A stretch of DNA of 64,000 nt from Obrimoposthia wandeli (lineage: Eukaryota), in contig CDROCS010002105.1 in assembly GCA_977020255.1 (NCBI GenBank), forward strand, positions 62,001 through 126,000, read 5' to 3'. Every line of letters begins with the position of its first letter. Positions within the stretch are counted from its first letter, which is position 1. Below the pieces are notes generated by a model. The model searched no databases, had not been told where the DNA came from, and saw only the letters and a list, made by a program, of their open reading frames with translations. Below, piece by piece: positions 4,635-24,728 of the stretch. Both the position numbers and the translations under genes were made by a program.

Positions 4635-4772
4635 TGTTAATTACCAAAATCGAGTTGTTTAATTAATATGTTCATTAACGTTGAGGTGTAAGAAGCCCCA
4701 AGAAAAATCTCGTTATATTAAATATCGGAAAAAGTGAGCAGCACTTAGCACTGCTCAAATGTTACGAGAGGG

Positions 4773-5807: not shown

Positions 5808-5985
5808 TATTATGTCCTCTTTTTTTATTATAAATGCAGTGTCATAGAGCGATGGTAGGTGACACTGTGTTCTTATCGCATCCGGCGATAAGCTTTTATC
5901 ATCCAACAGCCTACGGGCTATTGGGTAACTTTATTCAGAAGCTAGATAACGCCAGTTTAGTTTGCACTCATAGCGGCTAATCATA

Positions 5986-7411: not shown

Positions 7412-9025
7412 TTAACTTGAGGTGATTTTTGTGGGCAAGTTAACAATAATTCGAGTGCCTTTATTGGTGTCGAATGTATTGTTAGCTTGATTAGTGTGGC
7501 TTTTATTTTGTCCGATGTAGAGGTCACCGCCAAGAGCACTAACCCGTTCTTCTATTCCTTTTAAACCTAGCCCCTTGCTACGCCAATTCGTTGGTAAGCC
7601 GCAGCCATTATCTCGTAATTCAAGGCTGAAAATGCCGCCGGGTACTAAGCTCAGCTGTACCTCTGTGGCGTGTGAGTGCTTGGTGACGTTATTTAATAGC
7701 TCTTGCACAATGCGATACAGCGTGACTGCTGTAATGTCATCGAGCTTGTTGGTGGCAATACCAATATTGATTTTAAAATCGATCTGACGCTCAGCAAATT
7801 TCATTTCGTGCGCAAGCTGGCGTAATGCGCTTTCTAGCCCCAGTTCATCAAGAATATGGGGGCGTAATTGGGTTAACAGCTGTTTGGTTGTGCTGTGTAT
7901 GCGCATGGCTAACGTATTGATTGTTTGTGCGGTATTTTTAGTGTTCAGTTCTTGGGTTGTTCGGTCGACAAGCATGGCTTGGATCTGAATGGCCGTAATA
8001 TTCTGACCAATTTCGTCGTGTAGTTCCCGTGCCACTGATTTTCTAATGTTTTCTTCAACTTGGACTAATTGGCAAGCGAGATATTGTTTGCTTGCAAGTT
8101 CATCAGCCAGATCTTTGTTCGCTTGTTGTAATTTTTGGGCTAGTAGGTATTGGCGGCTTATCGCTATCCCCAATCCAAGCCCGACTAAAGCTTGTGTTGT
8201 GATAAAAATTTGTAACTCTTGGTCTGTAGTAAATGAGCCTGAAATTTGACGAGCCGTCGTGAGCAAGATGCTGTTCATTACCGTGGCAAGAACGCCCCCT
8301 TGCCAGCCATAGTGATAAGCCATAAAAATATTGGGTAGCAGAATGATCAATAACCCGAGAGGTTTCATTTGATCTAATAGTGTGAGTTCAGCAACGAGCC
8401 CAATACAGAAAAAAGCAATACTCCAGAGTAACGCCGAAGGACGAAGGGTGATTTCTTTATGCACTAATGTTGGGCTTAATGGAACCCAGATTTTATGATG
8501 GAGGTAGTCATAAAGTAGATACAAGAACGGAGTCAGCAATACACCGCCAGTAATGGAGGCAATCGTACACGAAAAGGCATATTGAAGTGATAAATCTAAT
8601 GGCTTCATTAATAAGAGGATCATGATGCCCATGATTACGCCATGTACTAAGACCAATAACACCAAGGCGAGTAATTTTTGCCAATAGGTCGTTAGTTTTC
8701 GCCAATTATGGGAAAAAGGAATCGCGAGGAAATAGCTAAAGAATGGACACAATAATAATAATATGTCCTGAGGTTGGTGGTTGATGATAGACAGTAGCCA
8801 TGCAGAAAGAAGGCATTCACTGATGACAAATAATCGCCAATAGCGGCGAGCGGTTAAGACAAATACCGCGAGCCTTAATCCGCTAGGAAGAAATAACCCT
8901 GCAAGTAGTAAATCAGCGGAAAGGTAGCTACTGATACTCCACAAGCAAAACCAACTGATGCTATAGATAATAAAACTAAAGGAATACGAAAAATAACGAT
9001 TACTGAGGTGCTCTGCTTGGGTCAT
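7412..9025 (-). CDS. uhpB: Sensor histidine kinase UhpB (MASE1 + HisKA_3 + HATPase)
   Basis: Multi-TM N-terminus, H-box ARELHDEIGQ, N-box ELLNNVTKH, G1 RDNGCG, G2 GLGLKGIEERV. Confidence 0.92.
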   Translation of the reverse strand: MTQAEHLSNRYFSYSFSFIIYSISWFCLWSISSYLSADLLLAGLFLPSGLRLAVFVLTARRYWRLFVISECLLSAWLLSIINHQPQDILLLLCPFFSYFLAIPFSHNWRKLTTYWQKLLALVLLVLVHGVIMGIMILLLMKPLDLSLQYAFSCTIASITGGVLLTPFLYLLYDYLHHKIWVPLSPTLVHKEITLRPSALLWSIAFFCIGLVAELTLLDQMKPLGLLIILLPNIFMAYHYGWQGGVLATVMNSILLTTARQISGSFTTDQELQIFITTQALVGLGLGIAISRQYLLAQKLQQANKDLADELASKQYLACQLVQVEENIRKSVARELHDEIGQNITAIQIQAMLVDRTTQELNTKNTAQTINTLAMRIHSTTKQLLTQLRPHILDELGLESALRQLAHEMKFAERQIDFKINIGIATNKLDDITAVTLYRIVQELLNNVTKHSHATEVQLSLVPGGIFSLELRDNGCGLPTNWRSKGLGLKGIEERVSALGGDLYIGQNKSHTNQANNTFDTNKGTRIIVNLPTKITSS

Positions 9026-9028
9026 GAT

Positions 9029-9658
9029 TTATTCTGCGAGTAATTTATGTTGAAGCGCAAAACGAATAAGATCAACGTTATTAGACAGCCCCAGTTTGCT
9101 GAGAATACTGGCGCGATGAACATGAATGGTTTTATAGCTAATGGAAAGTATGATGCCAGCCTCTTTAACGTCTTTACCCTGAATAAGATGAGTAAAGACC
9201 TCGTGTTCACGCTTGGTTAATGCGTCTAAGGCTTTGGGCGCGATAGGCGCATTACTGAGGTTAAACAAGGCATCGGCGCAAAGGTAGCGATCACCATTGG
9301 CGACGGTACGAATGGCCGTCACTAATTCTACGGGACCACATCGTTTAGATAAGTACCCACATGCGCCAGCTTCAATTGCTTTACTTACAAAAGACGCTGA
9401 ATCATAAATACTAAGAATAATGGCTCTAAAATTAGGATGTTTTGCGCGCAGTTTTTCTAATAGGATTAGGCCACTTTCATCGGGCATCGAGATATCAATA
9501 ACGGCAACATCGATTTTGGACACTGATAATGCTGCAAAGGCTTCACTTGCACGACCATATTCACCCTTTACTTCAATATCTGATTCGACATTAAGCAACT
9601 GAGCAAAACCGGAACGTACCATAAGGTGGTCGTCAACTAAGGCTACTGTAATCATCAT
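9029..9658 (-). CDS. uhpA: NarL/FixJ-family response regulator UhpA
   Basis: Receiver domain (LVDDH, DISMPD, GYLSK) plus LuxR HTH (LTKREHEVF...KTIHVHRASILSKL). Confidence 0.92.
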   Translation of the reverse strand: MMITVALVDDHLMVRSGFAQLLNVESDIEVKGEYGRASEAFAALSVSKIDVAVIDISMPDESGLILLEKLRAKHPNFRAIILSIYDSASFVSKAIEAGACGYLSKRCGPVELVTAIRTVANGDRYLCADALFNLSNAPIAPKALDALTKREHEVFTHLIQGKDVKEAGIILSISYKTIHVHRASILSKLGLSNNVDLIRFALQHKLLAE

Positions 9659-9727
9659 GACATCCTAATTATATTGATCACATCGTCGCAAAAGAGAAAC
9701 AAGCATACAATTTAGAGTCGGTTTAGA

Positions 9728-9743
9728 TGTGATGGTCGTCGCG
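9728..9743. promoter_or_regulatory. CRP-like site upstream of uhpA
   Basis: TGTGA-tggtcg-TCGCG against the consensus TGTGA-N6-TCACA. Confidence 0.4.
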
Positions 9744-9771
9744 AAATAGTGCTACAACGTACAACAAATAA

Positions 9772-9792
9772 AGCCACACGTTGTGTGTGGCT
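9772..9792 (-). terminator. Intrinsic terminator of amt
   Basis: Stem AGCCACAC/GTGTGGCT followed by TTTATTT on the minus strand. Confidence 0.65.
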
Positions 9793-9850
9793 CATTGAAG
9801 GATCTTTATATTTTTTGTTTATATGGTTTTTGGCTATTGTTCTTAGTTTT

Positions 9851-11083
9851 TTAATCTTCGCTAACAGAACCGATTTTGTGAATGGCTAAATCAGCGCCGT
9901 TATATTCATCTTCATCCGTTAAGCGTATGCCGACGGTTTTCTTGATGATGCCGTAAACAATGAAAGCGCCGATAACAGCAATAGCAATACCAGCCAGTGT
10001 ACCGATAACTTGGCTTGCTAAACTCACACCACCTAAACCACCGAACGCTTCACTACCAAAAATACCTGCGGCAATACCGCCCCAAGCTCCGCACACACCG
10101 TGAAGCGGCCATACACCTAATACGTCATCAAGGTGAAGACGGTTTTGAATATAAGTAAATAGCCATACGAAAAGCGCACCGGCAATCGCACCTGTTACTA
10201 AGGCGCCAATGGGGTGCATAAGATCAGAACCCGCACATACAGCAACTAGGCCCGCTAAAGGACCGTTATGAATGAAACCTGGGTCATTTTTGCCAACAAA
10301 AAGGGACGTAAGAATACCGCCAACCATGGCCATTAACGTATTCACCGCAACCAGACCACTAATACTGCCCATTGTTTGTGCCGACATAACATTAAAGCCA
10401 AACCAACCAATGGTTAAAATCCAAGCCCCTAAGGCGAGAAACGGAATATTCGAGGGGGCAAAGGCAATTAAGCGTCCGCCACGGTAACGACCATTTCGAA
10501 TACCCAGCATGGCAACGGCAACAAGGGCTATCCAACCACCGACAGCGTGAACAACGACAGATCCCGCAAAGTCATGGAACCCAAAGCCAAATGTGTCGGT
10601 TAACCAACCTTGAAAACCATAATTACCATTCCACATGATACCTTCGAAAAATGGGTAGACAAAAGCCACGATAAAGAAAGATGCAACGAGCATAGGGTAG
10701 AAACGCGCTCGTTCTGCAACACCACCGGAAATAATGGCGGGAATGGCTGCTGCGAATGTCATTAAGAAGAAAAACTTCACTAATTCGTAGCCATTAATTG
10801 CGCTTAACTGCTCTGCACTTGAGAAGAAAGTGACGTCGTATGCGACCCAGTAACCAATAAAGAAATAAGCAATCGCAGAAAATCCGAAATCAGCAATGAT
10901 TTTGACTAAAGCGTTCACTTGGTTTTTTTGTCTAACGGTGCCAACTTCAAGAAAGGCAAACCCTGCGTGCATGGCAAGTACCATGATCGCACCCAATAGA
11001 ATAAATAAAGTGTTAGAACTTTGAACCAGTGTTTCTACAGCATGACTAATATTATCCACAATCGTCACCACATCCTTGTACAT
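9851..11083 (-). CDS. amt: Ammonium transporter (Amt family), with no adjacent glnK
   Basis: About 11 TM segments, GFAFLEVG, DFAGSVVVH and WPLHG (twin His), GWFGFN. Confidence 0.93.
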   Translation of the reverse strand: MYKDVVTIVDNISHAVETLVQSSNTLFILLGAIMVLAMHAGFAFLEVGTVRQKNQVNALVKIIADFGFSAIAYFFIGYWVAYDVTFFSSAEQLSAINGYELVKFFFLMTFAAAIPAIISGGVAERARFYPMLVASFFIVAFVYPFFEGIMWNGNYGFQGWLTDTFGFGFHDFAGSVVVHAVGGWIALVAVAMLGIRNGRYRGGRLIAFAPSNIPFLALGAWILTIGWFGFNVMSAQTMGSISGLVAVNTLMAMVGGILTSLFVGKNDPGFIHNGPLAGLVAVCAGSDLMHPIGALVTGAIAGALFVWLFTYIQNRLHLDDVLGVWPLHGVCGAWGGIAAGIFGSEAFGGLGGVSLASQVIGTLAGIAIAVIGAFIVYGIIKKTVGIRLTDEDEYNGADLAIHKIGSVSED

Positions 11084-11139
11084 TAATATTGCGTTTGGGT
11101 ATTTCTATTTATATGCATTTATTATGGTAATGCCTACTA

Positions 11140-11155
11140 AGCATATTTTATGCCA
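11140..11155 (-). promoter_or_regulatory. Sigma-54 (-24/-12) promoter of amt
   Basis: Minus strand TGGCATAAAATATGCT, with GG and GC at canonical spacing, about 60 nt upstream of the start. Confidence 0.75.
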
Positions 11156-11171
11156 GCGTGAACCATAGTGG

Positions 11172-11367
11172 GGGGCCATATTGGTGCATGCAAATATTGG
11201 TAGTGGTAACTGTTTGTTTTTGAAAAGGCAGTGATTGTTTATGGCGCACGTAATTCGCGCATTAGAAATAAAGATAAGGGTGCTTTAAAATATACTGCTT
11301 AGTGTGCAACACTACTTTTAGTCCCATATTGGTGCGGTGAATAATGAATCCGCACTTATTTGGTGCG
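11172..11367. promoter_or_regulatory. NtrC-type enhancer sites upstream of the amt sigma-54 promoter
   Basis: cGCAC-ttatttg-GTGCg at 11351-11367, plus CCATATTGGTGC half-sites ending near 11336 and 11188. Confidence 0.65.
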
Positions 11368-11404
11368 TGTGCTTATATGTAATAGATAGATTCATTTTGA
11401 ATTT

Positions 11405-11445
11405 AAAAAGCCCTAGCAACGATTGAGTATTAGCGTTGCAAGGGC
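11405..11445 (-). terminator. Intrinsic terminator of the cco operon
   Basis: Stem GCCCT(T/A)GCAACG...CGTTGC(T/A)AGGGC followed by TTTTT on the minus strand. Confidence 0.7.
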
Positions 11446-11493
11446 GATTTATGGTACGTAATCTACAAATGGTACATAATCTAAAAATTGTAT

Positions 11494-13650
11494 TTAATCT
11501 ACATCGATATTCCGATCGCGTTTATCGTACATATCGGGTGTGGTGTGGAAATTACCCGCATAGCCGGCTTTTTGTAGCTTTTCTCGCACATCTTGTACGT
11601 TATTAGCTGTAATCGGTACAGTGCGATCGCCCAAGTATTGACGAATGAAAGAGATCAATTCAGACAACTGTGCATCCGTTAATATATTTTGGAAGCTGAC
11701 CATCGGCATGAAGTTTCTCTCTTCGCTGAGATAACTCGGCTCCAAACCACGAATAGTTACCGCAATAGTATTGTATGGGTCGCTGTGCATGATAATGCCG
11801 TTATTAAGCAAGGTTGGCGCAATAGGATCGCGCCCTTTACCGTCTTCGCCATGGCACACACCACAGGTCGTTTTGAAGAGTGTATACATGTCTGATTGCT
11901 TAGCTTGGTCTGTGAACCCGATTGGCTGCAACTGCTGAGTGTTAGGTGGAATGCGATTGTTGTCATCGCCGATCAGTAAATAGGTTGCCATCGCTTCTAC
12001 GTCGTCGCGGGTCATGAAACTGGTACTATTTTTAACGACGTCAGCCATGCCCCCAAATGCAGACCCTTTGTCGGAGTGGCCGGTGTGCAAAAAGTCGGTC
12101 AACGATTTAACGTCCCAACGATCTTGGTACAGCTCTTGCGATGAAATATTTGGGGCATTCCAACCATCAATCAAGTTACCTTGAAAAATTTTATCCGCTT
12201 CCAATGCTTGGGCAATATTTCGTGGGGTGTGACATTCAGAGCAGTGTCCAAGCCCCATTACTAAGTATTTACCGCGAGACCAAATGTCGGTTTCTTCTCC
12301 CGTTCCTCCTTTGGGAGCATTGCTAGTCAAATCGAGTGGGGCAGTATCCATAAAGGCGATATTCCAGCCGAGTAATCCCAAACGGATGTTTGATGGAAAT
12401 ATCATGCTGTTTTCGTCATTACGGCGTGGCACTGCAGTAATGGATTGTAGGTAATCCCACATCGCTAGCACATCATCTTCAGTGACGTATTGGTATGAGG
12501 TATAAGGCATTGCTGGATACAAGTAACCGTGCTTGCCTTTTCCGTCATACAGGGCGGCTTTGAAATCCTCATAGTTGTAATCCCCGATGCCTTCTGTGAC
12601 ATGCGGGGTAATGTTTGTAGAATATACGGTACCAAAAGGTGTTAAGAACGGCAGTCCGCCAGCAAACGGTTCACCCCCTTCAGCACTATGACAGGCAACG
12701 CAGTCACCCGCATAAGCGAGGTATTCCCCTTTCTTGATTGTATCTTCAGGGATGGCTGCGATCTTGGCATTGTGAGCAATACGTTGCTCAGTAATATAGG
12801 CACCTAACGCCAAAATTTCGTTATTGCTGAGTTGCCCTTCAAACGCAGGCATTACGTTATTTAAACCGTTATTAATTGTGTGCTGAATTTCTTCAATACT
12901 GCCACCGTGTACCCAGACGCTATCAGATAAGTTAGGTGCGCCAATCACTTGGTTTCCTTTTGCATCGGCACCATGACAAGCGACACAATTTTTCAAGAAC
13001 GCGGTTTTACCCAGATTGATTTTCACCGATGGCGCATTGAGCGGGCGTTGTTGCAACGATGCGAGATAGTAAGATATATTTTGAATGTCTTCTTTCGGTA
13101 AAATAGCTTTCCAACCCGCCATCGCACCATTTCTGCCTTGCTTAATTGAATGTAAAATTGCCTCGTCAGTACCACCATATAACCAGACATCATCTACTAC
13201 GTTAGGAAAATGCTTCTGACCTTGCCCATTCGCACGGTGACACGCGGCACAATGGGTTTGAAACAGTGCTTTACCTGATGCGGCAATGGCAGGCTCTGCC
13301 GCAAGTACGGTTAATGTTGGGGAGGTTATATTGGCAATTTGCTCATCGAGAGACGCACTGTGTTCTCGTGGGGTGTCATCACTTTGTTGCCAGCCGAGTA
13401 GCCCTTGCCAATTCCCTAACCCTGGATACAAGATTAAAAAGAGGATAGAGCAAGAAAAAGCAACAAAGTACGCAATGAACATAATGCGCGGTGGTGGGCC
13501 GTCATTTTCATCAATATTATCGAAAGAGTCGACCGTTTTATTCTCATCGGCAAGATGGTTAGTTTTCCAGTACTTAACCACGACCAATATCATAAATACT
13601 AAGAAAATAATGGTAAGGGTTATTACCCATATATTCCAAAATCCAGTCAT
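11494..13650 (-). CDS. ccoP: cbb3-type oxidase subunit III (CcoP) fused to a triheme cytochrome c (gluconate/aldehyde dehydrogenase cytochrome type); 5 CXXCH
   Basis: CcoP N-terminus (FWNIWVITLT...FDNIDENDGPPP...LYPGLGNWQGLLGW) with CAACH and CVACH. This continues in one ORF into KGEYLAYAGDCVACH...TPFGTVYSTNITP...CSECHTPR...CGVCH. Confidence 0.9.
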   Translation of the reverse strand: MTGFWNIWVITLTIIFLVFMILVVVKYWKTNHLADENKTVDSFDNIDENDGPPPRIMFIAYFVAFSCSILFLILYPGLGNWQGLLGWQQSDDTPREHSASLDEQIANITSPTLTVLAAEPAIAASGKALFQTHCAACHRANGQGQKHFPNVVDDVWLYGGTDEAILHSIKQGRNGAMAGWKAILPKEDIQNISYYLASLQQRPLNAPSVKINLGKTAFLKNCVACHGADAKGNQVIGAPNLSDSVWVHGGSIEEIQHTINNGLNNVMPAFEGQLSNNEILALGAYITEQRIAHNAKIAAIPEDTIKKGEYLAYAGDCVACHSAEGGEPFAGGLPFLTPFGTVYSTNITPHVTEGIGDYNYEDFKAALYDGKGKHGYLYPAMPYTSYQYVTEDDVLAMWDYLQSITAVPRRNDENSMIFPSNIRLGLLGWNIAFMDTAPLDLTSNAPKGGTGEETDIWSRGKYLVMGLGHCSECHTPRNIAQALEADKIFQGNLIDGWNAPNISSQELYQDRWDVKSLTDFLHTGHSDKGSAFGGMADVVKNSTSFMTRDDVEAMATYLLIGDDNNRIPPNTQQLQPIGFTDQAKQSDMYTLFKTTCGVCHGEDGKGRDPIAPTLLNNGIIMHSDPYNTIAVTIRGLEPSYLSEERNFMPMVSFQNILTDAQLSELISFIRQYLGDRTVPITANNVQDVREKLQKAGYAGNFHTTPDMYDKRDRNIDVD

Positions 13651-13652
13651 GA

Positions 13653-14270
13653 TTATTGCTCCTGATCGTGCATGGTATCGAGACCCAAGCTTTGTAGGTA
13701 ACGAATCAATGCTTCACCTTGGGTTTTGCCTACGACCTGAAGGCGTGCACCGTCAATATCATTATCGGAATAAGGTACACCTAGTGTTCTAAGTGTCTGC
13801 ATTTTATCGGTGATATCATCGCTATCTAGCACTTGTTCAAACAGCCAAGGGTAGGAGGGCATGAGTGATGTTGGTATAACATTGCGTGGGTTGATCAGGT
13901 GAATTTGGTGCCATTGATCTGAATATTTCCGTCCAATATTAGTCAGATCTGGCCCTGTGCGTTTTGAACCCCAGAGGTTTGGAAATTCGTAGATGTCATC
14001 AGCTTCTTTGTTGGCGCGACCGTTACGTAAAATTTCAGCTTCTAATGGTCTCACCATTTGGGTATGGCACACATGACAGCCTTCACTGATGTAGATATCA
14101 CGCCCTGCCAATTCTATGGCTGTTAATGGTTTAGCCAGAGACGTTTTTGCCAATTCGGCCGCCAAGAAAAGATTGGGTACGACCCACACCAACACCGAAA
14201 ACGCTGCTACGACGGTGGTTGATACAATTAGGATGAAAACGGATTGAGTAAAATCTTTACTGAACACCAT
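13653..14270 (-). CDS. ccoO: cbb3-type cytochrome c oxidase subunit II
   Basis: GRDIYISEGCHVCHTQMVRP, WGSKRTGPDL, SLMPSYPWL. Confidence 0.95.
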   Translation of the reverse strand: MVFSKDFTQSVFILIVSTTVVAAFSVLVWVVPNLFLAAELAKTSLAKPLTAIELAGRDIYISEGCHVCHTQMVRPLEAEILRNGRANKEADDIYEFPNLWGSKRTGPDLTNIGRKYSDQWHQIHLINPRNVIPTSLMPSYPWLFEQVLDSDDITDKMQTLRTLGVPYSDNDIDGARLQVVGKTQGEALIRYLQSLGLDTMHDQEQ

Positions 14271-15682
14271 TATTTACCCTCCATGGCCACTGTAGATGTC
14301 GCCTTGGATGACACGGTTTTATAGAGATTGAATACCATCATCAATAAGCCCACAACAAAGAATACGCCGCCTAAGAAGCGAACGAACAACCATGGTGCTT
14401 TGAAATCCATGGCTTCGACAAAGCTGTAAGCCAACGATCCGTTATCCAATTGGGTAAGCCACATATAGCCTTCGCCAATACCAGCAACCCATAGAGCAAT
14501 GGCATAGAGTGCGACGCCGATATGAGCAAACCAGAAGTGCCACTTCAACAAGCGATTCGACCAGAGTTCTTCTTTGCCCCACAAGCGCGGAATAAAGTAA
14601 TAGAATACTGCAATGCCTGACATACCGACCCAGCCCAGTGCGGCAGAATGCACATGGCCAATAATCCACTCGGTGTTGTGCGCTACCATGTTAAACCAGC
14701 GAATGGCGAGTAATGGCCCTTCAAAGGTGGCTAAGCAGTAATACAAAATGGCAGAAAAGAAGAACAACATGATGTAATCTTTTTTCAGTTTCTCTTTGTT
14801 CGAGAGTAAGGTCATGGCGCTGTTGAAAGCGCCACCCCATGACGGAATCCACAATATCAACGACATAACGATGCCGATATTTTGTATCCAAACCGGTACG
14901 GAAGAATAAATAAGATGGTGTGTGCCAGCCCAAGTATAGAAGCCGACTAAACCCCAAAAGTGGATTACTGATAAACGATAAGAATAAATAGGGCGTTCAG
15001 ATATTTTGGGAATGAAATAGTAATTCATCCCGATCACACCAGCTGTTAGTAAAAATCCGACAGCATTATGGCCCCACCACCACTGCACGATAGCGTCTTG
15101 TGCGCCGGCATAGATGGAATAGGATTTCCACATCGATACAGGAAGAGCCAAATTGTTGATGATAAAGATCATCGCGATCACGATGATAAATGCCCCGAAA
15201 AACCAATTAGCGACAAATATATGACTAACTTTTCTTATGGCAATGGTGCCAAAAAATAATATGGCGTACAGTACCCAAACAAGCACAATTAAAATATCGA
15301 TTGGCCATTCGAGTTCTGCGTATTCTTTGCTGGTGGTATAACCTAACGGCAAGGTAATTAACGCCAGTACTAATATAAGTTGCCAGCCCCAGAATACCAT
15401 CCAAGAGAGGCTTTTATTAAATAGAGGAACTTGGCTGGTACGTTGGACGATATAGATCGAGGTACCCATTAATATATTAACGACAAAGCCAAATATCACG
15501 CCGGAAGTATGAAGAGGGCGTAAGCGTCCAAATTGAAAATACTGTGAGTCAAAATTAAGTTGAGGCCAATAGAGCTGTGCCGCCAAAATAACACCGATTG
15601 TCATGCCTGCTACAGCCCAGATAACGGCAGCAACGACAAAATAGCGAACGACTTTAATATCGTAATCCCTAGCGATATCCAT
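14270..15682 (-). CDS. ccoN: cbb3-type cytochrome c oxidase subunit I
   Basis: FGRLRPLHT, EYAELEWPID, WWWGHNAVGF, WAGTHH, HNTEWIIGHVH heme-copper ligands. Start is the ATG at 15682 or the TTG at 15685. Confidence 0.95.
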   Translation of the reverse strand: MDIARDYDIKVVRYFVVAAVIWAVAGMTIGVILAAQLYWPQLNFDSQYFQFGRLRPLHTSGVIFGFVVNILMGTSIYIVQRTSQVPLFNKSLSWMVFWGWQLILVLALITLPLGYTTSKEYAELEWPIDILIVLVWVLYAILFFGTIAIRKVSHIFVANWFFGAFIIVIAMIFIINNLALPVSMWKSYSIYAGAQDAIVQWWWGHNAVGFLLTAGVIGMNYYFIPKISERPIYSYRLSVIHFWGLVGFYTWAGTHHLIYSSVPVWIQNIGIVMSLILWIPSWGGAFNSAMTLLSNKEKLKKDYIMLFFFSAILYYCLATFEGPLLAIRWFNMVAHNTEWIIGHVHSAALGWVGMSGIAVFYYFIPRLWGKEELWSNRLLKWHFWFAHIGVALYAIALWVAGIGEGYMWLTQLDNGSLAYSFVEAMDFKAPWLFVRFLGGVFFVVGLLMMVFNLYKTVSSKATSTVAMEGK

Positions 15683-15687
15683 CAAAC

Positions 15688-16026
15688 TTACTCCGTTTTA
15701 CTGTGCGATTCTGACCCAAGCGTTGAGTAATAGTGGGCAATGTCTTTCATGTCTTGATCTGTGAGTACATCGGCTTGCTGTTGCATTAAAATTGCTAGCC
15801 CGCTGGTACGTTCACGAGATTTGTAATCTTTAAGCGCAGACACAAGATAAGACGCACGTTGCCCGCGTAAATTTGGATAGGGATCGATCGTGGCAATGCC
15901 ATCGACACCATGGCACGTCATGCACACTTTTGCCTTTTGTTTCCCTACTTCAAATTGGTCTGATTCTTCAGCAAAGAGAGCATTGCTAAATAAGAGAATG
16001 CAGCTGGAGATTAACCATTTATTCAT
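15688..16026 (-). CDS. Periplasmic monoheme class I cytochrome c (c553/c554-like), first gene of the cco operon
   Basis: Signal peptide, CMTCH, YPNLRGQ, distal Met (LMQQQA). Confidence 0.88.
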   Translation of the reverse strand: MNKWLISSCILLFSNALFAEESDQFEVGKQKAKVCMTCHGVDGIATIDPYPNLRGQRASYLVSALKDYKSRERTSGLAILMQQQADVLTDQDMKDIAHYYSTLGSESHSKTE

Positions 16027-16428
16027 CGTTACAACCTAAATAGAATTACTTTAATAAAATTAGCCTATAAATGTTTTTTTGATAGTGAAAATAGGCAGAA
16101 TAATTAATCGATATTTTTTTGTTCTTGTCAGGGAGGTAAATAAAAGAAGGGTAATGTGTCTATATCTTTGGTTATTAATACGCAATTAAAGTGTGGGTAT
16201 TGGGTGTTTGTTAAATAAGCAAGATCTGCCTTTGTCAGGATTATTTAATTATAAACAATTACTTGTTGGGTTTTGTTTTTCTGGTTGTTATGAAAATAAC
16301 GTATTTATTTTCTGTTACGCTCAGTGCTATTTAATTGTTGATTATGAAAATAAAAATAATCACTTAACCAAAAGTGAAAATATTGAAAACTGTTATATGC
16401 TTTAACTTAAATCAACCCCCTTCCATTT

Positions 16429-16447
16429 GATAATGGTTCTCATTAAT
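16429..16447. promoter_or_regulatory. Fur box upstream of the Mo-hydroxylase operon
   Basis: GATAATGGTTCTCATTAAT matches 14/19 of GATAATGATAATCATTATC and ends 30 nt before the ATG. Confidence 0.55.
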
Positions 16448-16477
16448 TGGCCTTTCTTTAATTGTTAAGGAAGAAAT

Positions 16478-19330
16478 ATGACAGGGTCTACACTTTCTCG
16501 CCGATCTTTCATTAAGCAGTGTGTTATCGGAGGTGTCGCTGTTTACAGCGCACCGTTATTGATGAATATGAATAACGCACAAGCTGCAGCGATCTCTCCT
16601 GAATTGCTAGAACAATGGAAAGGGAAAAATAAGCCGAATTTTCGTTTAGATGGGATCGCGAAAGTAACGGGAGAGAAAATTTACGGACGAGATTACCGTG
16701 CCATTGATATCCCTGATTGGCCAGATGCACAAACACACGCGTATGTGTTGCGCGTAAATAAAGCGGATCGTGTATTCACGGGGATTGATTTAACTTGGCT
16801 GCCAGAAAATATGCAGCCGAATAAAGTAATTACAGCCAGTATGCTAGCGGCAGATAACGTCGAATTACCTGCATTTTATGGCGATAAGATGTTGTTAGCA
16901 GAAGGAGACACACCAGATTACCTTGGTCATCCTGTTGCACTTTTGTTATTTGATGATTTCACATCATTCAAACGGGCTAAAGTTCGATTACAGTTCAGTG
17001 AAAAAGCAATAAAATACGGTGCGATAGTACCTCTTACATCACTCAGCAAAGATCCTTACTCGGCATGGCGTATTATTCGTACCGAAGGTGAAGATGGTGC
17101 GGCGGGAAAAGACAAATACAGTACGTTGCAAGATGGCTTGTTCTTTGCGAATTATGAAAACCATAAACCAGTTTGGCCGACTCACTCTGATGAAATTGGT
17201 GATGCTGGGGCACGTGGTATGTTTTATGCTCAGCAGATGTCGAGGCTATTGGATAAGCAACAAGAAGACAAAACCTGGTTTATTCTGGATAAAACCTATC
17301 AAACTCAGTCTGTTGAACCAATGATGATGGAACCAGAATGCTTTAATGGTTGGTTTGATGGCACGAACAATACACTGCATGTTGTAATTACATGTCAATC
17401 GCCACAAGATTTTTATGCTCAAGCAGGTGAAATGTTAGCGCATAGCCCGTTAGCAGGCAAAATAGAAAAGCTGGTTGTACATTCCCCTTTCATTGGTGGT
17501 GGTTTCGGTGCGAAAGATCACTCAGCCTTCCCGTATTACGGTTTGCTCGCAGCGATGTATTCAGACAAGCCTGTTCGGTTAGCAAATGATCGGTTTGAGC
17601 AATTCCAAGCAGGATTGAAGCGGCATCCTTTTACTATGCATAACCGTTTAGCTATCGATAAAGAAACCCTCAAATTCAAGGCTGTCTTATCTGATATGAC
17701 GTTAGATGGTGGTGGCCGTAAAAACTTCACAGATTCTGTCACTATGGTCGGTGCCAGTGCGCTGCAAAGTATTTATTATTTTCCTCAAAATGATATTACC
17801 GCTGTTGCTTACCCTTCACAGACTCCTGATTGTGGCTCGATGCGTGGGTACGGTACTTTGCAGTCGATGGCTGCAATGGAAATGATGGTGAATGAATCGG
17901 CTGAATTGCTAGACGTTGATCCATTTCAGCTGCGGCTCTCCAATTTAATGGAACCTGGTTATCGCAACACTCAAGGCGCGATTCCAAATGGTACCGCGCG
18001 TTATCGTGAAATGTTAGAACTTGCTCAACAGCATGATATTTGGGTGAATCGTGCTACCAATAAAGCTACATTTGAAGCTGAAAACCCAGGCCGTCGATAT
18101 GGGGTTGGGTATGGCATTGCGACCAAAGATTATGGCAACGGTGCGCAAGCGCCTTCAGCGTATGTATCGGTGGCGAGTGATGGCAGTATTGTTGTACGTG
18201 TTTCCTCAATGGAGATGGGAACAGGCACTCAAACGGCACAAGGCATGCTGATAAGTCGATATCTCGGCAATATGGCCGATGATGTGTCGTTAGCAGAAAT
18301 TCAGTTGTGGGATGCAATGCAATTGAAAGAAACAGATTCACCGTACTTGATCTCGCAAGAGCGGCAAAATGCGATGGCGAAAAATCCGCGTTGGACGCCT
18401 GTAGCAGGCATGGCATCTTCAGCGTCGCAATCGGCGTATTACCAAAGTCATGCAACAGAAAATGCAGCGCGACTAATATTTGAACATGGCTTATGGCCTG
18501 CCGCGGTTGCGATCTGGAAAAAACATTATTTCAATGGTGAGTATGCCGTGGCTGATTTTGGTGATATCGGCAATGCTCGTTGGGTTGACGGTAAATTGAC
18601 TGCCAGTGGTTACCCCCCGTTACCGCTAGAAATCGTGGCGAAGCAAGCGCACATGATGGGTTTGGTGACGGGCGTAATGGTGCATGGCTTTAATCGGTGG
18701 GCATGGACAGAAGCAGAATTTGATGTAGAAGGGCAGCGTCAAAAACTTGCAGTAGATGCTATGGCTTTGCAATACGGAGAAGGGGCGTCGTTAGAGAAGC
18801 AAGCTTTAATGGCTGGTGATGGGTTTCATTTGTTAGATCGGGTGTCTGTAAATTACCCACTCACATCGCTCAATAACGCGATGGTGACCTATTATGCCCC
18901 CTGTGGCACCTTGGCTGAAATTGCCATTCATGAAGGCAGTGGTGAAGTGGAAGTATTGCGTACGCACACATGGTTAGAGTGTGGACGAGTGCTCGTCGAA
19001 AAGTTGGTGGAAGGACAAATTGAAGGTGGCTTGGTGATGGGGCTTGGTCATGCATTGCATGAATATTTACCGTCTGATGCTGAAGGGGCGGGTAACGGTA
19101 CGTGGAACCTCAACCGCTACCAAGTACCTTTAGCTAAACATGTTGGTGTGTGGAATCTCACTCATACAACCCTCCCTCCATTATCAGATACCGACCCCAG
19201 TAAAGGCATTGCTGAAGTAGTGATGATTCCTATTGTTCCTGCGTTAGTTGAAGCGATATATCAAGCTTCAGGTGCTCGTTTCTACCATCTTCCAATTACC
19301 GCAAAAGAGATTAAGAAGGCATTAGTATGA
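16478..19330 (+). CDS. Tat-exported xanthine-oxidase-family molybdopterin-binding subunit (IorB/AldH-like); substrate unknown
   Basis: Twin-arginine SRRSFIK with an AQA cleavage site. Moco motifs GGGFGAK, MRGYG, MEMGTG, GQIEGG, SKGIAE (catalytic Glu). Confidence 0.9.
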   Translation: MTGSTLSRRSFIKQCVIGGVAVYSAPLLMNMNNAQAAAISPELLEQWKGKNKPNFRLDGIAKVTGEKIYGRDYRAIDIPDWPDAQTHAYVLRVNKADRVFTGIDLTWLPENMQPNKVITASMLAADNVELPAFYGDKMLLAEGDTPDYLGHPVALLLFDDFTSFKRAKVRLQFSEKAIKYGAIVPLTSLSKDPYSAWRIIRTEGEDGAAGKDKYSTLQDGLFFANYENHKPVWPTHSDEIGDAGARGMFYAQQMSRLLDKQQEDKTWFILDKTYQTQSVEPMMMEPECFNGWFDGTNNTLHVVITCQSPQDFYAQAGEMLAHSPLAGKIEKLVVHSPFIGGGFGAKDHSAFPYYGLLAAMYSDKPVRLANDRFEQFQAGLKRHPFTMHNRLAIDKETLKFKAVLSDMTLDGGGRKNFTDSVTMVGASALQSIYYFPQNDITAVAYPSQTPDCGSMRGYGTLQSMAAMEMMVNESAELLDVDPFQLRLSNLMEPGYRNTQGAIPNGTARYREMLELAQQHDIWVNRATNKATFEAENPGRRYGVGYGIATKDYGNGAQAPSAYVSVASDGSIVVRVSSMEMGTGTQTAQGMLISRYLGNMADDVSLAEIQLWDAMQLKETDSPYLISQERQNAMAKNPRWTPVAGMASSASQSAYYQSHATENAARLIFEHGLWPAAVAIWKKHYFNGEYAVADFGDIGNARWVDGKLTASGYPPLPLEIVAKQAHMMGLVTGVMVHGFNRWAWTEAEFDVEGQRQKLAVDAMALQYGEGASLEKQALMAGDGFHLLDRVSVNYPLTSLNNAMVTYYAPCGTLAEIAIHEGSGEVEVLRTHTWLECGRVLVEKLVEGQIEGGLVMGLGHALHEYLPSDAEGAGNGTWNLNRYQVPLAKHVGVWNLTHTTLPPLSDTDPSKGIAEVVMIPIVPALVEAIYQASGARFYHLPITAKEIKKALV

Positions 19331-19860
19331 CGACGATTAAAATGACGGTAAACAATCAGTCAGTCGGTCCGATTGATGTCTCGCCCGAGCTAATGATGAT
19401 TGAATTTCTTCATGAGCATCTGAATCTAACAGGAACGAAATTTGGCTGTGGTGCAGGCGTGTGCCATGCGTGCACAGTGATTGTGGATAAAGAGGATGGT
19501 ACCAGTGAAGTTGTGAGAAGTTGCATTAATGGTGTTGAGCGTTTCAATGGAAAAACGATTCGTACTGTTGAAGGGCACGCTACTAAGAATGAACAAGGAC
19601 AAATTGAAGCACTCAGTAATGTGCAAGAAGCCTTTATTGAACATTTTTCATTTCAATGTGGTTGGTGCACGCCGGGCTTTGTAAATGAAACGACTGTTTT
19701 GTTAGAAAAGCTAAAAAAGCAGCCAGTTGCGGTGGGTGAAGTGGATAACGTAATAGCGAAGGCTTTGGGCGATCATATCTGTCGTTGTACTGGTTATGTA
19801 AAGTATTACCAAGCAGTTAAAGATCTTATTCTGACCACAGAAGGATTGACCTTATCATGA
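19327..19860 (+). CDS. 2x[2Fe-2S] small subunit of the Mo-hydroxylase
   Basis: GTKFGCGAGVCHACTV, QCGWCTPG, CRCTGY. Overlaps the upstream stop codon and has no signal peptide of its own. Confidence 0.93.
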   Translation: MTTIKMTVNNQSVGPIDVSPELMMIEFLHEHLNLTGTKFGCGAGVCHACTVIVDKEDGTSEVVRSCINGVERFNGKTIRTVEGHATKNEQGQIEALSNVQEAFIEHFSFQCGWCTPGFVNETTVLLEKLKKQPVAVGEVDNVIAKALGDHICRCTGYVKYYQAVKDLILTTEGLTLS

Positions 19861-21191
19861 AAATGTTACGTTCATCCTCGAGACTTTCTTCGGTATTTAT
19901 CAAGCCTAATAACATAGGTAGGCTAACGGTATTAATAGCAGCGGTTGTGATGAACATGATTGCTATCGAACGCGTGATAGCGGCTGAAGAGAACACATCG
20001 TCAGCTAATCAGAAAAACGATAAAGATATGATTGAGAAAGGCGCTTATTTAGCCAAAATGGGAGATTGTGTGGCTTGTCATACTATTCCTGATGGACAAG
20101 AATTTGGTGGTGGACTCGCGTTTTTTACACCATTTGGCACTATGTATTCCACGAATATTAGCTCAGATAAAGATCATGGAATTGGTCATTACAGCTACGA
20201 AGATTTTTATTCAGCATTGCATGATGGTATCGCACCAAAAGGTAATCTGTATCCGGCGATGCCTTACACTTCTTATCGCTTGTTAACCGATGATGATACC
20301 CGTGCGTTGTATGCTTTTTTTATGAATACCCAACCTGTACAACAAAAGAATAAAGGCAATGATGTGGGTTTCCCATTCAATATTCGTATGGGATTAAAGG
20401 GATGGAATCTGGTTAATCTTGAAAGTGGAATATTCCAACCAGTACCAGACAAGAGTGAGGCGTGGAACAAAGGTAACTATATTGTGAATGCCTTAGGTCA
20501 TTGTGGCGAATGCCACACGCCGCGGGGTACCTTATTCGCGATGGATGAGTCTAAGCAATTTGAGGGGGCAATGATTGAAGGTTATGAAGCCTCAAACATT
20601 ACATCAGCAGAGTTGAACCGACAAGCTTGGACAGCCATGGATCTAGAGCAATTGTTGCGGACAGGATATTCTCGTAAAGGTACTATTTTTGGTGGTATGT
20701 ACCCAGTGGTATATCACAGTTTGAGTTATTTAACGGCAGATGATATGTCGGCAGTTACTACCTATTTATTAGATACCGATTTGGCAGTAAGCGAGGTTGT
20801 TGAACCGGTAGCATTAACCTTTAATGGGCATGATGAATCAGCCCCAGGATATGGTTTATACAATGCCTATTGCGCAGGATGTCATGGTGTTGATGGAGAA
20901 GGAAAACCGAATATTTCGCCAGCGATGGCGGGTAATTCTACTCTGGATCAAGCCGAACCCATTAATACCGTTGCTGTCTTGCTAAATGGCGTAGGCGATC
21001 AGCGATACAGCCAAACGCAAAGTTTTTATGCCATGCCAGGCTACCGTAACGAGATGGATAAACAACAACTGACAGACTTAATCAATTACTTGCAAAAAAC
21101 GTGGACGACCCAGAAAGGCGAATTAACCCAAGAAAAGATCAATATGATTATTTCTAAAGTGGAGGATAGTTTGCCAGATGCAGCTCACTGA
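19857..21191 (+). CDS. Triheme cytochrome c subunit (AldF/gluconate dehydrogenase cytochrome type)
   Basis: Signal/anchor sequence, GDCVACH, GHCGECHTPR, YCAGCH, TPFGTMYSTNIS, YPAMPY. Confidence 0.9.
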   Translation: MKMLRSSSRLSSVFIKPNNIGRLTVLIAAVVMNMIAIERVIAAEENTSSANQKNDKDMIEKGAYLAKMGDCVACHTIPDGQEFGGGLAFFTPFGTMYSTNISSDKDHGIGHYSYEDFYSALHDGIAPKGNLYPAMPYTSYRLLTDDDTRALYAFFMNTQPVQQKNKGNDVGFPFNIRMGLKGWNLVNLESGIFQPVPDKSEAWNKGNYIVNALGHCGECHTPRGTLFAMDESKQFEGAMIEGYEASNITSAELNRQAWTAMDLEQLLRTGYSRKGTIFGGMYPVVYHSLSYLTADDMSAVTTYLLDTDLAVSEVVEPVALTFNGHDESAPGYGLYNAYCAGCHGVDGEGKPNISPAMAGNSTLDQAEPINTVAVLLNGVGDQRYSQTQSFYAMPGYRNEMDKQQLTDLINYLQKTWTTQKGELTQEKINMIISKVEDSLPDAAH

Positions 21192-22179
21192 TCATCACGT
21201 ACTACAACAAGTATTTGCATGGTTGAAAGATAACCAACCTGTTTGGTTATGTACCATTGTCGCTACATATGGTTCTGCGCCACGTCCTATTGGTTCACTG
21301 TTTGCGACGAATGGTCATGATCGTATTGGTTCTATCTCGGGAGGCTGTTTAGAAGAATCTTTTGTCGCCATGCTTAAAGAGGAGGGATCGGTATTTACCG
21401 AAGCTGCTAGTTTGTTTAGTTATGGAAATCATATAGCCGATCAAGGTTCAGTATTGGAGTTGCCTTGTGGCGGTACGATTACGTTACTGATTGAGCGTTT
21501 ACAGCCTGACCAACTAACATTGCACCAGTACGCACAATGGGTAGAGTTGGCGGAATACAAAAAACCGTTTCAGCGTAAGGTCTGTTTACGCACAGGGCAA
21601 GTAACCTTACAAACTGATACTGATGCTTTGTTATTACAGCCTTCGCAAAATGGTACGGGGGCGAGTGTGTCAGAAGTATCGGTGACACTATATTATTCTC
21701 ATGTATGGCAGCTATTAATTTTGGGGATAAGTCAGGTTAGTTATCACGTGGCTCAGCTGGGTCTTATGGCGGGGTATGAGGTGAAAATCTGCGACATGCG
21801 TGAAGAGCTGCAAGATGCTTGGCATTTTGCTGCGAAACAAGGTGGTGTGGATATAACTTGGTTATCGCCAGACTTATTTGTTGATCAATATTGTGACAAA
21901 CAAACCGCTGTTTTAGCGTTAGCTCATGACCCTAGAATTGATGATATCGGCCTGATGGGCGCCTTAGAATCATCAGCATTTTATATTGGAGCAATGGGTT
22001 CATTACGCACCAGTGAAAAGCGCGTTGAGCGTTTACACCGTATAGGAGAATATGACTACGATACTTTGGCTCGTTTACATGCGCCAATTGGGTTAGATAT
22101 TGGCAGCAAAACGCCAATGGAAATTGCCATCGCTATTATGGCGGATATTATTTCGCATAAAAACAAAGTATACATTTAA
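21178..22179 (+). CDS. xdhC: XdhC/CoxI-family Moco sulfuration/insertion chaperone
   Basis: GSAPRPIGS, SISGGCLE, LPCGG, HDPRID, YIGAMGS, LHAPIGLDIGSKTPMEIAIAI. Confidence 0.92.
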   Translation: MQLTDHHVLQQVFAWLKDNQPVWLCTIVATYGSAPRPIGSLFATNGHDRIGSISGGCLEESFVAMLKEEGSVFTEAASLFSYGNHIADQGSVLELPCGGTITLLIERLQPDQLTLHQYAQWVELAEYKKPFQRKVCLRTGQVTLQTDTDALLLQPSQNGTGASVSEVSVTLYYSHVWQLLILGISQVSYHVAQLGLMAGYEVKICDMREELQDAWHFAAKQGGVDITWLSPDLFVDQYCDKQTAVLALAHDPRIDDIGLMGALESSAFYIGAMGSLRTSEKRVERLHRIGEYDYDTLARLHAPIGLDIGSKTPMEIAIAIMADIISHKNKVYI

Positions 22180-22448
22180 AAATAATAAATAATATCCACA
22201 TTCTATTAATTAATGTTACGCTTAATCGGTAATATTAAAATTTATGGTGTTATTTTTGTTAAATAAATATTTTAACGATTTTATAATATTGGCTAATTTC
22301 TGATATAGATAATACGCTTTCGCATCCAACTCCACGTTGAATCAATAGATATTGCTGTAATTTTGTCATAGGTGACTTTTTTTTGACACAATAAATATGT
22401 ATCTCGTATGCATGTAAATGTGTGTTTTACATTGAGAACATTCCCATG

Positions 22449-22464
22449 CGTGAGATGTATCACT
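22449..22464. promoter_or_regulatory. CRP-like site in the AT-rich spacer upstream of the MCP
   Basis: cGTGA-gatgta-TCACt. Confidence 0.5.
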
Positions 22465-22814
22465 TTTTTTATACCTTTTAGTTCTTATAATCGATAGTGT
22501 AGATGTATGCCCATCTTTTTATACTAAATGAACATATAAGATTCATTAGTCTCAATATAGCTTCGCTAGTGAATAATGGCTTTTTTCACAATGAAAAAAA
22601 TGATTTCAATTTGTAGTATGTCGCTGAGGTTCGCGTAGCTTATTGAGATTGAACCATATCAAAGAAATTATAAAAATAATGAATTTTCAAGTCTTGTCTG
22701 AGGCTGAATTATTTGCAATGACGACATTAGCGGTGACATATGCTTATAACTGCAACGCAATGAGAAAATTATTAATAATCATAACAGAACGTATTTGAAG
22801 AACATGAGGGTTAC

Positions 22815-24728
22815 GTGAATATATTATCTAGTTTTAAGGGCCGTATTATCGCGGTTGCCGTTTTATTATTAACTGCTTCTTTAGCAATTTCGACCTCTCT
22901 TTCCTATCGCCAACTTTCAACCTCAATTCTGAGCAATATTGATGAATACTCCATGCTTAAAATTGAGAGCTCGTCCGATAAGATTACCGACTGGTTTCAC
23001 ACAATAAAAGAAGGTGTCATTGCAACAGCACCAGACTTCGCGACTGACCGCGGTGATATACAACTCGCTTTAATGGTTAAGCAAATCTCGAACGCAACAA
23101 AATCGTCAGATATCGTTGTAGCCTTTGAGGACGGCCGCTCTTATGGCGCTAAAAGTGGTATGCGCAGCCTACTTATCTACGATCCGCGTATACGAGGTTG
23201 GTATAAATCGGCCAAGCAGAAGCGCAGCACAGTAATCACCGGAATCTATACAGGGGCATCGTCAGGCAACTTGATGGTCAGCATCGCAGAACCTTTTTTC
23301 GATGGGAATAAGTTTCGTGGTGTTTTACTTGCTGATATCGAATTGAGCCTTCTTACCGATGTTGTTAATCAGTCCCCCTTCCCCGGAGCAATGACTGGTT
23401 TATATGACAGCCAGGGTACAACCATTGCTTCAACTGGCGAAGTCGATGTTCCTGGTAAAACCAAACTGTCTGACTTCCCCGAATTAGCAGAACTAGAGCG
23501 TAAAGTTCTTACTAGCGATAGTGGTATTTTCAACTACAGCTTAGGTGGAGTTGAAAAAATAGCTTACTTTCAAGATATTGAGCTTGATAAAGAGACCCGC
23601 TGGCACCTATTAGTGGGTATTGATAAATCAACGGTTTACGCAGAGGTCGATGAGGCGTTGGAAACATCTTTATTCACTGCTGGGTTATTAATTCTCTTTG
23701 CTTCCGCGATTATTTTGGTTGTGCTGAATCGGCTGTATCGACCAATTCTTGCGTTAAAAAGCACAATAGTCGAGTTATCACAAGGTAATGGTGATCTTAC
23801 TCGACGCCTTGATGTGTATACCAAGGATGATCTGGGCCAAATCGCAGAGGCGGTAAATATCTTCATCGGCAATTTACAAGCGATGATGCTAGAAGTATCT
23901 CAATCTAGCGAACATATTTCAGAAGGTATCGAGCAACTCAAGGCTCAGACCGAGCTTAACGATACCGTCTTAGCTTCTCACTCGGTAGAAACAGATCAGG
24001 TAGTAACCGCAGTAAATGAAATGAGTTCGACGGCAGACAGTGTATCGCAAAGCGCTTCTCAATCTGCGGCATTTACGAAAAATACTAGTGATGAAGCTGA
24101 GCAATCTAAACGTGTGGTTGACGGTGCCGTAACCAGTGTCGCCGCCTTGGTTGATGAAGTTGACGCCATGGCACTCAATATTCAAACCATGAGTGATGAT
24201 GCTCAAAAAATTGGCTCTGTTCTTAGTGTTATTGGTGAGATTGCCGATCAAACTAATTTATTAGCTTTGAATGCAGCTATCGAAGCGGCTCGTGCCGGAG
24301 ATCAAGGGCGTGGTTTTGCGGTTGTAGCTGATGAGGTACGCGCTTTGGCTGCAAGAACCCAGCAGAGTACATCTGAAATTAATGACATGTTGAGTAAGTT
24401 ACACAAGGGAACAAGCTCAGTCGTTACAGCTATGGACGATACTAAGCGTCGATGTCAAGAAACTGCAGATACGACTTCCAACGTAAATGATAGCCTAGAT
24501 TCAATGGCGACATCAGTGGTCCAAATTAATGATCTTGGAATCCAGATTGCCACGGCTGCAGAGCAGCAAAGCGTGGTCAGTGAAGAGATAAATCGCAATA
24601 TGACGGCAATTCAGGACATGGTTGGTCGGCTTACCGATAATGGTGCACAAACCATGGATAGTACGCGTAACCTTGCAAGCAGTAACGAACAGCTGGCGGC
24701 GATCGTAAATCAATTTAAGTTAAAGTAA
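22815..24728 (+). CDS. Methyl-accepting chemotaxis protein (dCache_1, HAMP, MA domains)
   Basis: TM-dCache-TM layout, [13 protein letters not shown] (GDLTRRL), signalling tip [37 protein letters not shown] start. Confidence 0.93.

Follow-up and report, generated by a model that had tools for sequence, protein, structure and literature searches.

Comparison with described systems

Oxidases of the cbb3 type are textbook cytochrome c oxidases that are fed by the cytochrome bc1 complex (bc1). Typically, though not universally, their operons carry ccoQ between ccoO and ccoP and are adjoined by ccoGHIS. The present analysis concerns a variant of such an oxidase and the molybdenum (Mo) enzyme encoded beside it in a 64,000-nt stretch of contig CDROCS010002105.1 (hereafter the window; all coordinates are positions within it). 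Two divergent four-gene units, an oxidase cassette on the minus strand and a Mo enzyme operon on the plus strand, are separated by a spacer of 451 bp, and the ccoP gene of the cassette continues into a triheme cytochrome c domain, such that CcoP carries five heme motifs. The cassette constitutes a self-sufficient module (cyc1-ccoN-ccoO-ccoP::triheme), the CcoP of which contains a triheme cytochrome captured as a copy from a Mo enzyme family, in which it serves as a subunit; this family is labelled here Mo945, after its large subunit of about 930-965 amino acids (aa). This five-heme cassette is itself a more general and more interesting object than its pairing with the Mo enzyme.

The two operons, their gene orders, and the spacer had already been given in a preliminary description of this DNA; our map of open reading frames (ORFs) agrees with it, as do the domain matches. 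The arrangement is not an assembly artefact, since the divergent layout recurs in contigs of a 94%-identical relative and the whole stretch is spanned, with flat depth, by one contig of a public sequencing run.

Compared to the canonical CcoNOQP enzymes of Pseudomonas stutzeri (3MK7) and of the bc1-cbb3 supercomplexes of Pseudomonas aeruginosa and Rhodobacter capsulatus (8SNH, 6XKX), the cassette is alike in its equivalog scores and in residues 1-287 of CcoP. The catalytic subunit I, CcoN (14270..15685; 471 aa, TTG start), scores at equivalog level as a member of the C family (cbb3-type), with 600.1 bits for TIGR00780 against a cut-off of 583.15, and matches Pfam COX1 at 2e-100. The monoheme subunit II, CcoO (13653..14270), lies above the cut-offs of TIGR00781 (203.9 vs 200.65) and NF011055 (237 vs 218) and contains Pfam FixO. 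The entire fused gene (11494..13650) encodes 718 aa. Its CcoP part proper (12790..13650; residues 1-287) is a membrane-anchored diheme subunit with two transmembrane segments, a FixP_N domain, and the heme motifs CAACH (134-138) and CVACH (222-226); it exceeds the cut-off of TIGR00782 (199.1 vs 179.95, residues 37-287) and aligns end to end with the solved CcoP chains 3mk7_C and 8snh_G. By these sequence criteria the cassette is a cbb3-type oxidase, and cytochrome c:O2 activity is predicted.

Despite this similarity, there are several differences from the canonical enzymes. There is no ccoQ between ccoO and ccoP, because the two genes overlap (listed ends 13653 and 13650), no ccoGHIS genes are present in the window flanks of the cassette, and an FNR box is missing upstream. 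Furthermore, the cassette is headed by a gene for a soluble cytochrome, named cyc1 here (15688..16026), which encodes a monoheme class-I cytochrome c of 112 aa with Pfam Cytochrom_C, a signal peptide, and the motif CMTCH, predicted to be periplasmic. Finally, CcoP possesses three extra hemes. As Photobacterium profundum SS9 has a separate canonical cbb3 oxidase at PBPRA1834 (PMC3669370), the cassette is to be regarded as a second oxidase.

The extra part of CcoP (11494..12789, minus strand) comprises a linker of about 14 residues, an AdhB-like triheme domain (residues ~302-695; CVACH 317, CSECH 470, CGVCH 596), and a conserved tail. All five heme motifs of CcoP are invariant among 12 diverse homologues. 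The triheme domain (residues 300-690) matches 8gy2_B, 8hdd_B, 7w2j_C, and 8gy3_A, and the same chains are found with E-values of 1e-55 to 1e-72 for the triheme cytochrome subunit of the Mo enzyme, named cyc3 here. In both units the three CXXCH domains are collinear with the solved members of the AdhB/AldF type. Thus both belong to the same three-domain fold family as AdhB (8GY2_B), AldF (8GY3_A), FdhC (7W2J_C), and GDH beta (8HDD_B), to which they are collinear over about 390 residues (E 1e-46 to 1e-72). Those proteins, however, occur as free subunits and hand electrons on to ubiquinone. Of the two copies here, cyc3 is likewise free and encoded in the operon of its dehydrogenase, whereas the other is covalently joined to a terminal oxidase in every cassette.

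The nearest precedent for the fusion is the engineered cytochrome c1-CcoP-cytochrome cy protein of Rhodobacter capsulatus (PMC7876108; 6XKX), in which, likewise, a cytochrome c fused to CcoP feeds a cbb3 oxidase without a diffusible carrier. Whereas the Rhodobacter protein was made artificially, contributes a single heme, and is tied to bc1, the fusion described here is natural, contributes three hemes, and originates from a dehydrogenase subunit. In a literature search, no paper on a CcoP::triheme or pentaheme fusion was found.

Origin of the fused triheme domain

Between residues 302-695 of CcoP and cyc3, the identity is 38% over 394 residues (E 7e-100); the four motifs quoted in the preliminary description in support of a paralogous relationship are all present. 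This similarity alone proves little, however. The motifs are shared throughout the AdhB-like triheme family, with the patterns AGDC[VI]ACH and YSTNITPH matching no fewer than 600 stretches of the genome collection, and the CcoP extension shows 36-40% identity to triheme members of unrelated enzymes, so that the value for the neighbouring subunit is not higher. Raw similarity therefore fails to single out the neighbouring cyc3.

The proposed relationship stands nevertheless, on the evidence of a tree and of signature residues. The tree comprised 75 triheme domains (LG+C20), among them six cytochromes of the Mo945 type, two fusions from distant clusters, and eleven representatives that had been added to a first version. 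The fused domains, including both distant clusters, form a single clade (100/99), which is nested in a clade (99/98) consisting otherwise of cytochrome subunits from Mo945-type operons, while the FAD-type, IorB-type, and other cytochromes are situated on the far side of the tree. The nearest unfused relative (P0243) is located in an operon of the order Mo(933 aa)-FeS-cytochrome c. Moreover, of 10 Mo945-specific signature residues the fused domain has 8, against a single one of the 15 that mark the FAD- and IorB-type cytochromes. Taken together, the tree, the position of the nearest unfused relative, and the signature residues lead to the conclusion that the CcoP extension was captured from, and hence derives from, the cytochrome subunit of the Mo945 enzyme family. 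The signal peptide of the ancestral cytochrome is replaced by the linker after the second CcoP heme domain. Long-branch attraction was considered as the cause of the grouping in the first tree and was rejected, as the grouping held with the added sequences and with the signature residues.

At the end of the fused CcoP, the tail (11494-11580, minus strand) shows the pattern AGY.G..HTTPDMYD.RD in all close homologues. A histidine within the last few residues also ends many Mo945-type cytochrome subunits (DAAH, DATH, TEH, GAH).

Distribution of the oxidase cassette and the Mo operon

Full-length five-heme CcoP homologues with 60-96% identity are found in Aliivibrio, Photobacterium, Shewanella, Psychromonas, Sinobacterium, and many Vibrio (V. 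splendidus, V. chagasii, V. crassostreae, V. harveyi, V. rotiferianus, V. mediterranei, V. breoganii, and others). Several of these hosts, i.e., Vibrio harveyi, V. splendidus, V. chagasii, Aliivibrio, Photobacterium, and Shewanella, are well-studied and genetically tractable marine bacteria. The fusion is nonetheless confined to a narrow lineage, since among 1.8 billion representatives the full fused architecture occurs in only three clusters at 50% clustering.

The order cyc1-ccoN-ccoO-ccoP::triheme is kept as a block in 23 species-level genome loci, 22 of them intact and one frameshifted (L023), and cyc1 heads the cassette in 22 of these 23 as well as in L081, L090/91, L093, L096, and L097. 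In the frameshifted locus, from Vibrio ishigakensis JCM19241, the cassette genes are split into several ORFs, which probably reflects frameshifts in a low-quality draft and not decay. Concerning the surroundings, the flanks vary by genus and include Usp, RIO kinase, GGDEF/EAL proteins, chemoreceptors, peptidases, and antiporters; no conserved neighbour, be it a partner dehydrogenase or a regulator, was found across the genera compared. No Mo operon lies within 7-10 kb of the cassette in the 22 intact genome loci, the frameshifted one, and four metagenome lineages (about 26 lineages), as is true, e.g., of the distant cluster P0242 and of the metagenome loci L096-L098.

The Mo operon, in turn, exists as a free-standing cassette (MoL-FeS-cyc3-XdhC, usually followed by a MocA-like gene) with unrelated flanks and without cbb3 genes in seven contexts: a 70%-identical metagenome relative, Vibrio profundum, Shewanella frigidimarina, Photobacterium phosphoreum, Aeromonas, a metagenome-assembled genome of Campylobacterales, and Pseudomonas knackmussii. 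The Mo945 family furthermore reaches Microbulbifer, Cupriavidus, Collimonas, and Halomonas; in Microbulbifer and Cupriavidus, too, the Mo operon stands by itself and this oxidase is lacking. Mo subunits were searched with two queries, that of the window and one from a Vibrio. The closest match to the former, in a ranked protein listing, is from Photobacterium profundum (97%). Down to 43-47% identity, the only named Vibrio among the matches listed are sp. 10N.286.49.C2, V. profundum, and sp. SS-MA-C1-2, and no homologue from Aliivibrio or from the extensively sequenced V. splendidus, V. chagasii, V. harveyi, and V. mediterranei clades, all of which carry the cassette, is among them. According to the ranked listings, the named hosts of both modules are a Photobacterium profundum-like bacterium, Psychromonas marina, V. 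profundum, and Vibrio sp. SS-MA-C1-2; in the latter two the modules are situated on different contigs or replicons. Most cassette hosts are not among the Mo-subunit matches listed, and most hosts of the Mo enzyme lack the cassette.

The two operons are thus distributed largely independently, the very outcome that the preliminary description had named as speaking against its proposal of a dedicated pair. Neither conserved synteny, with the modules adjacent only in the window lineage and in Psychromonas marina and apart in about 26 other cassette lineages, nor genome-level co-occurrence, with most hosts of either module lacking the other in the ranked listings, bears this proposal out. Judged from these sequence data, the oxidase is therefore not dedicated to the Mo enzyme, and the Mo enzyme does not depend on the oxidase.

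Adjacency and intergenic spacer

In Psychromonas marina, the Mo operon comes directly after the cassette and on the other strand, such that the two are convergent, tail to tail. In the tree, neither the CcoP nor the cyc3 of this species groups with the copies of the window; the former is placed with Shewanella, the latter with V. profundum, and the nearest relatives of the window modules, in Aliivibrio EL58 and in L082, lack the adjacency. The two juxtapositions are therefore best read as independent events. A rough estimate of the probability that two given operons lie within 1 kb of each other in a 5-Mb genome is ~4e-4 per genome; on this estimate, two adjacencies among the few genomes with both modules would be far above chance. 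What remains of the functional pairing put forward in the preliminary description is hence in part supported: it appears real at this locus and to have an evolutionary basis, given the adjacency here and in Psychromonas marina and the descent of the fused domain from a Mo945 cytochrome; the modules are mostly apart, however, and the pairing would be facultative rather than dedicated.

The spacer between the divergent operons of the window (16027..16477) is AT-rich. In the 94%-identical relative (L093), both the divergent layout and the flank with amtB, response regulator, and kinase are kept; in the spacer, both promoter-proximal parts are kept, whereas the central 90 bp constitute an indel. 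This insertion of about 90 bp (within 16190-16290 of the window) repeats a motif, TTATTTTCATAA, that is found just beside it. A scan for FNR/ANR boxes (TTGAT-N4-ATCAA, up to two mismatches) revealed nothing conserved upstream of 24 cassettes, and no regulator gene that might serve as a shared control was found next to the operons in their flanks. Neither a Moco (molybdenum cofactor) riboswitch nor any other element was detected in an Rfam scan of positions 11000-23000, and matches in a promoter and terminator scan did not rise above those in shuffled sequence.

Proposed electron path and alternative explanations

To the following reading we would give an even chance: as an accessory cbb3 oxidase, the cassette uses a captured dehydrogenase cytochrome as entry wire and is coupled facultatively to the neighbouring Mo enzyme. 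The direction of electron flow, the donors, and the bypass of bc1 are here what we infer. The N-terminal heme domain of the captured copy would be tied by the linker to the distal heme domain of CcoP. Electrons would enter at the free C-terminal end of the fused domain, pass through its three hemes to the two hemes of CcoP, and reach O2 by way of the CcoO heme, heme b, and heme b3-CuB, bc1 being bypassed. The second module would be a dehydrogenase for an aldehyde or a heterocycle, exported by the twin-arginine translocation (Tat) pathway and composed of Mo, 2x[2Fe-2S], and triheme cytochrome subunits, which has kept its own cytochrome and could run without the oxidase. At this locus it might donate electrons via cyc3 or by docking of its Mo-FeS pair.

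As the oxidase adjoins the source family of its extra domain both here and in Psychromonas marina, the neighbouring Mo enzyme is a likely electron donor at this locus, yet neither an exclusive nor an obligatory one. Because most hosts lack the Mo enzyme, the oxidase must also take a general donor, which could be cyc1, other periplasmic donors, or quinol.

The polarity of the proposed wire fits what is described for the two parent systems. An FDH variant without the N-terminal heme-1c domain still gives electron output (PMC10529900), which implies that electrons come in from the catalytic partner at the C-terminal hemes and leave at the N-terminal one. The distal CcoP heme is where external cytochrome c2 enters a cbb3 oxidase, and no soluble carrier is required for the activity of the engineered c1-CcoP-cy fusion (PMC7876108). 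By analogy, the heme at which electrons enter CcoP would abut the exit end of the wire, whose own entry end would be free.

A natural CcoP with an annexed three-heme dehydrogenase subunit thus points to a bc1-independent entry into a high-affinity oxidase. More tentatively, and as something we hold possible rather than probable, the fused domain might give this cbb3 oxidase a donor not known for any C-family oxidase, either by direct oxidation of ubiquinol or by a docked Mo-FeS pair, or other dehydrogenase modules, forming a covalent substrate:O2 supercomplex without quinone, bc1, or a soluble carrier. The fusion would be a natural example of respiratory 'supercomplexes by fusion'; as its donor lineage is traceable and the donor enzyme still adjoins it in two genomes, the question of coupling is directly testable.

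Several points weigh against the reading of a facultatively coupled accessory oxidase. Among solved structures, the relatives of both triheme units reduce ubiquinone as subunits of membrane-bound dehydrogenases, and the coupling could therefore run via quinone and not directly. Adjacency is found in only 2 of about 28 cassette lineages, and no shared operator was found in the spacer of the window, either in the FNR scan or in the comparison with the 94%-identical relative. In addition, the absences of Mo945 enzymes rest on ranked protein listings rather than on whole-genome scans.

Coupling by quinone only is the main rival, albeit an unlikely one. Here, cyc3 would reduce ubiquinone and the fused copy would run the same site in reverse, so that the cassette would be a quinol-oxidising cbb3 oxidase that bypasses bc1 without any specific dehydrogenase partner; if true, it would be the first quinol-oxidising cbb3. 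Both triheme units are homologous to the quinone-reducing cytochrome subunits of ADH, ALDH, FDH, and GDH. Furthermore, the cassette is kept in many genomes without the Mo enzyme and its donor should therefore be universal, and a diheme CcoP is already enough for the cytochrome c pool, so that an extra domain should bring a new donor. On the other hand, provided that triheme subunits have their quinone site at the N-terminal heme, as we assume, the three invariant extra heme motifs exceed the need of a quinol site on the CcoP side. The cassette moreover retains a soluble cytochrome c of its own, cyc1, and we know of no C-family oxidase that oxidises quinol. Likewise, no hydrophobic anchor beyond the CcoP helices was found in the fused domain. 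Concerning anchors in general, cyc3 has none other than its N-terminal signal, and C-terminal membrane anchors are lacking in the triheme proteins of every group, such that this feature cannot separate the quinone from the cytochrome route.

Less probable still is the absence of any functional link, i.e., that two mobile accessory cassettes came to lie side by side and that the fused domain is fed only by cyc1 or the general cytochrome c pool. Both modules are indeed patchy and context-free, as horizontally moved cassettes are, and an indel at the centre of the spacer points to promoters that are separable. By chance, however, two independent adjacencies would be very unlikely in so small a number of genomes with both modules, and the descent of the fused domain from the Mo945 family makes a coincidence less likely still.

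Least probable, by a little, is an obligate chain in which the Mo enzyme feeds this oxidase only and the oxidase exists to serve the Mo enzyme: the divergent adjacency kept in the 94%-identical relative, the independent convergent one in Psychromonas marina, and the Mo945 descent of the fused domain would accord with it, but about 26 cassette lineages lack a nearby Mo operon, the main Vibrio clades and Aliivibrio have no homologue among the matches listed, the Mo operon is widespread without the cassette, and V. profundum and Vibrio sp. SS-MA-C1-2 hold the modules on different contigs or replicons.

The molybdenum enzyme

The Mo operon, on the plus strand, begins with the Mo-binding large subunit of the xanthine-oxidase family (16478..19330; 950 aa), which contains Pfam MoCoBD_1 and MoCoBD_2 and the twin-arginine signal SRRSFIK. 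It is followed by the 2x[2Fe-2S] small subunit (19327..19860; 177 aa; Pfam Fer2_2 and Fer2), which has no signal peptide and is probably co-exported along with the Tat subunit, by cyc3 (19857..21191; 444 aa), a triheme cytochrome c with a Sec-type N-terminal signal and the motifs CVACH 71, CGECH 216, and CAGCH 339, and by a cytoplasmic chaperone of the XdhC family for Moco insertion (21178..22179; Pfam XdhC_CoxI and XdhC_C).

This combination of Mo subunit, 2x[2Fe-2S] subunit, Tat signal, and XdhC, with no FAD subunit, is that of the periplasmic xanthine-oxidase-family enzymes with a cytochrome c subunit (PaoEFG/IorAB/AldFGH type). Among them, PaoEFG of Pseudomonas is a periplasmic aldehyde oxidoreductase consisting of a 2Fe-2S protein, a Mo subunit, and a cytochrome c (PMC12064950). 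Equally to the enzyme of the window, the described enzymes of this type are periplasmic and possess a 2x[2Fe-2S] subunit and a c-type cytochrome in place of the FAD subunit. However, the gene order is Mo-FeS-cytochrome c here and FeS-Mo-cytochrome c in PaoEFG, the Mo subunit is longer (about 945 aa vs about 730-790 aa in the PaoEFG/IorAB/AldFGH type), and the cytochrome belongs to a clade separate from that of the IorB type. PaoEFG was considered as the same enzyme and ruled out by its gene order and by the position of IorB-type cytochromes in another clade.

The Mo subunit misses all NCBIfam equivalogs (XdhA, PaoC, CoxL, 4-HBCR, and others), the best score being 186 bits against a cut-off of 780, and its best relative in the PDB reaches only 1e-26. 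Judged by these comparisons, Mo945 is a large uncharacterised family of periplasmic Mo enzymes with a large subunit of about 945 aa, to which the present analysis draws attention. Across the Mo-operon loci compared, no conserved neighbour genes hint at the substrate.

Neighbouring genes and minor observations

The two operons of the window are flanked by amtB, a two-component pair, and a methyl-accepting chemotaxis protein. Beside the oxidase (7412-11083), the ammonium transporter is accompanied by a MASE1 histidine kinase and a LuxR-type response regulator; this group is kept in the 94%-identical relative and not in other genera. On the other side, xdhC is followed by a gap of 635 bp (22180-22814) with 32% GC and no credible ORF, at the place where relatives have a gene for a MocA-like cytidylyltransferase. 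The next gene after the xdhC region in the 94%-identical relative is not the same as the dCache chemoreceptor gene of the window.

Further redox genes are found near single copies of either module. In Pseudomonas knackmussii (L089), a cytochrome bd quinol oxidase of the cioAB type (3686-6292) is encoded upstream of the Mo945 operon (8001-14134), at a distance of about 2 kb that includes an MFS gene; this proximity of a terminal oxidase may be a coincidence. In Shewanella sp. c952 (L022), the cassette is immediately followed by a gene for a di-haem cytochrome c peroxidase (12232-13785) and immediately preceded by one for a DAO-type FAD oxidoreductase (5841-7163).

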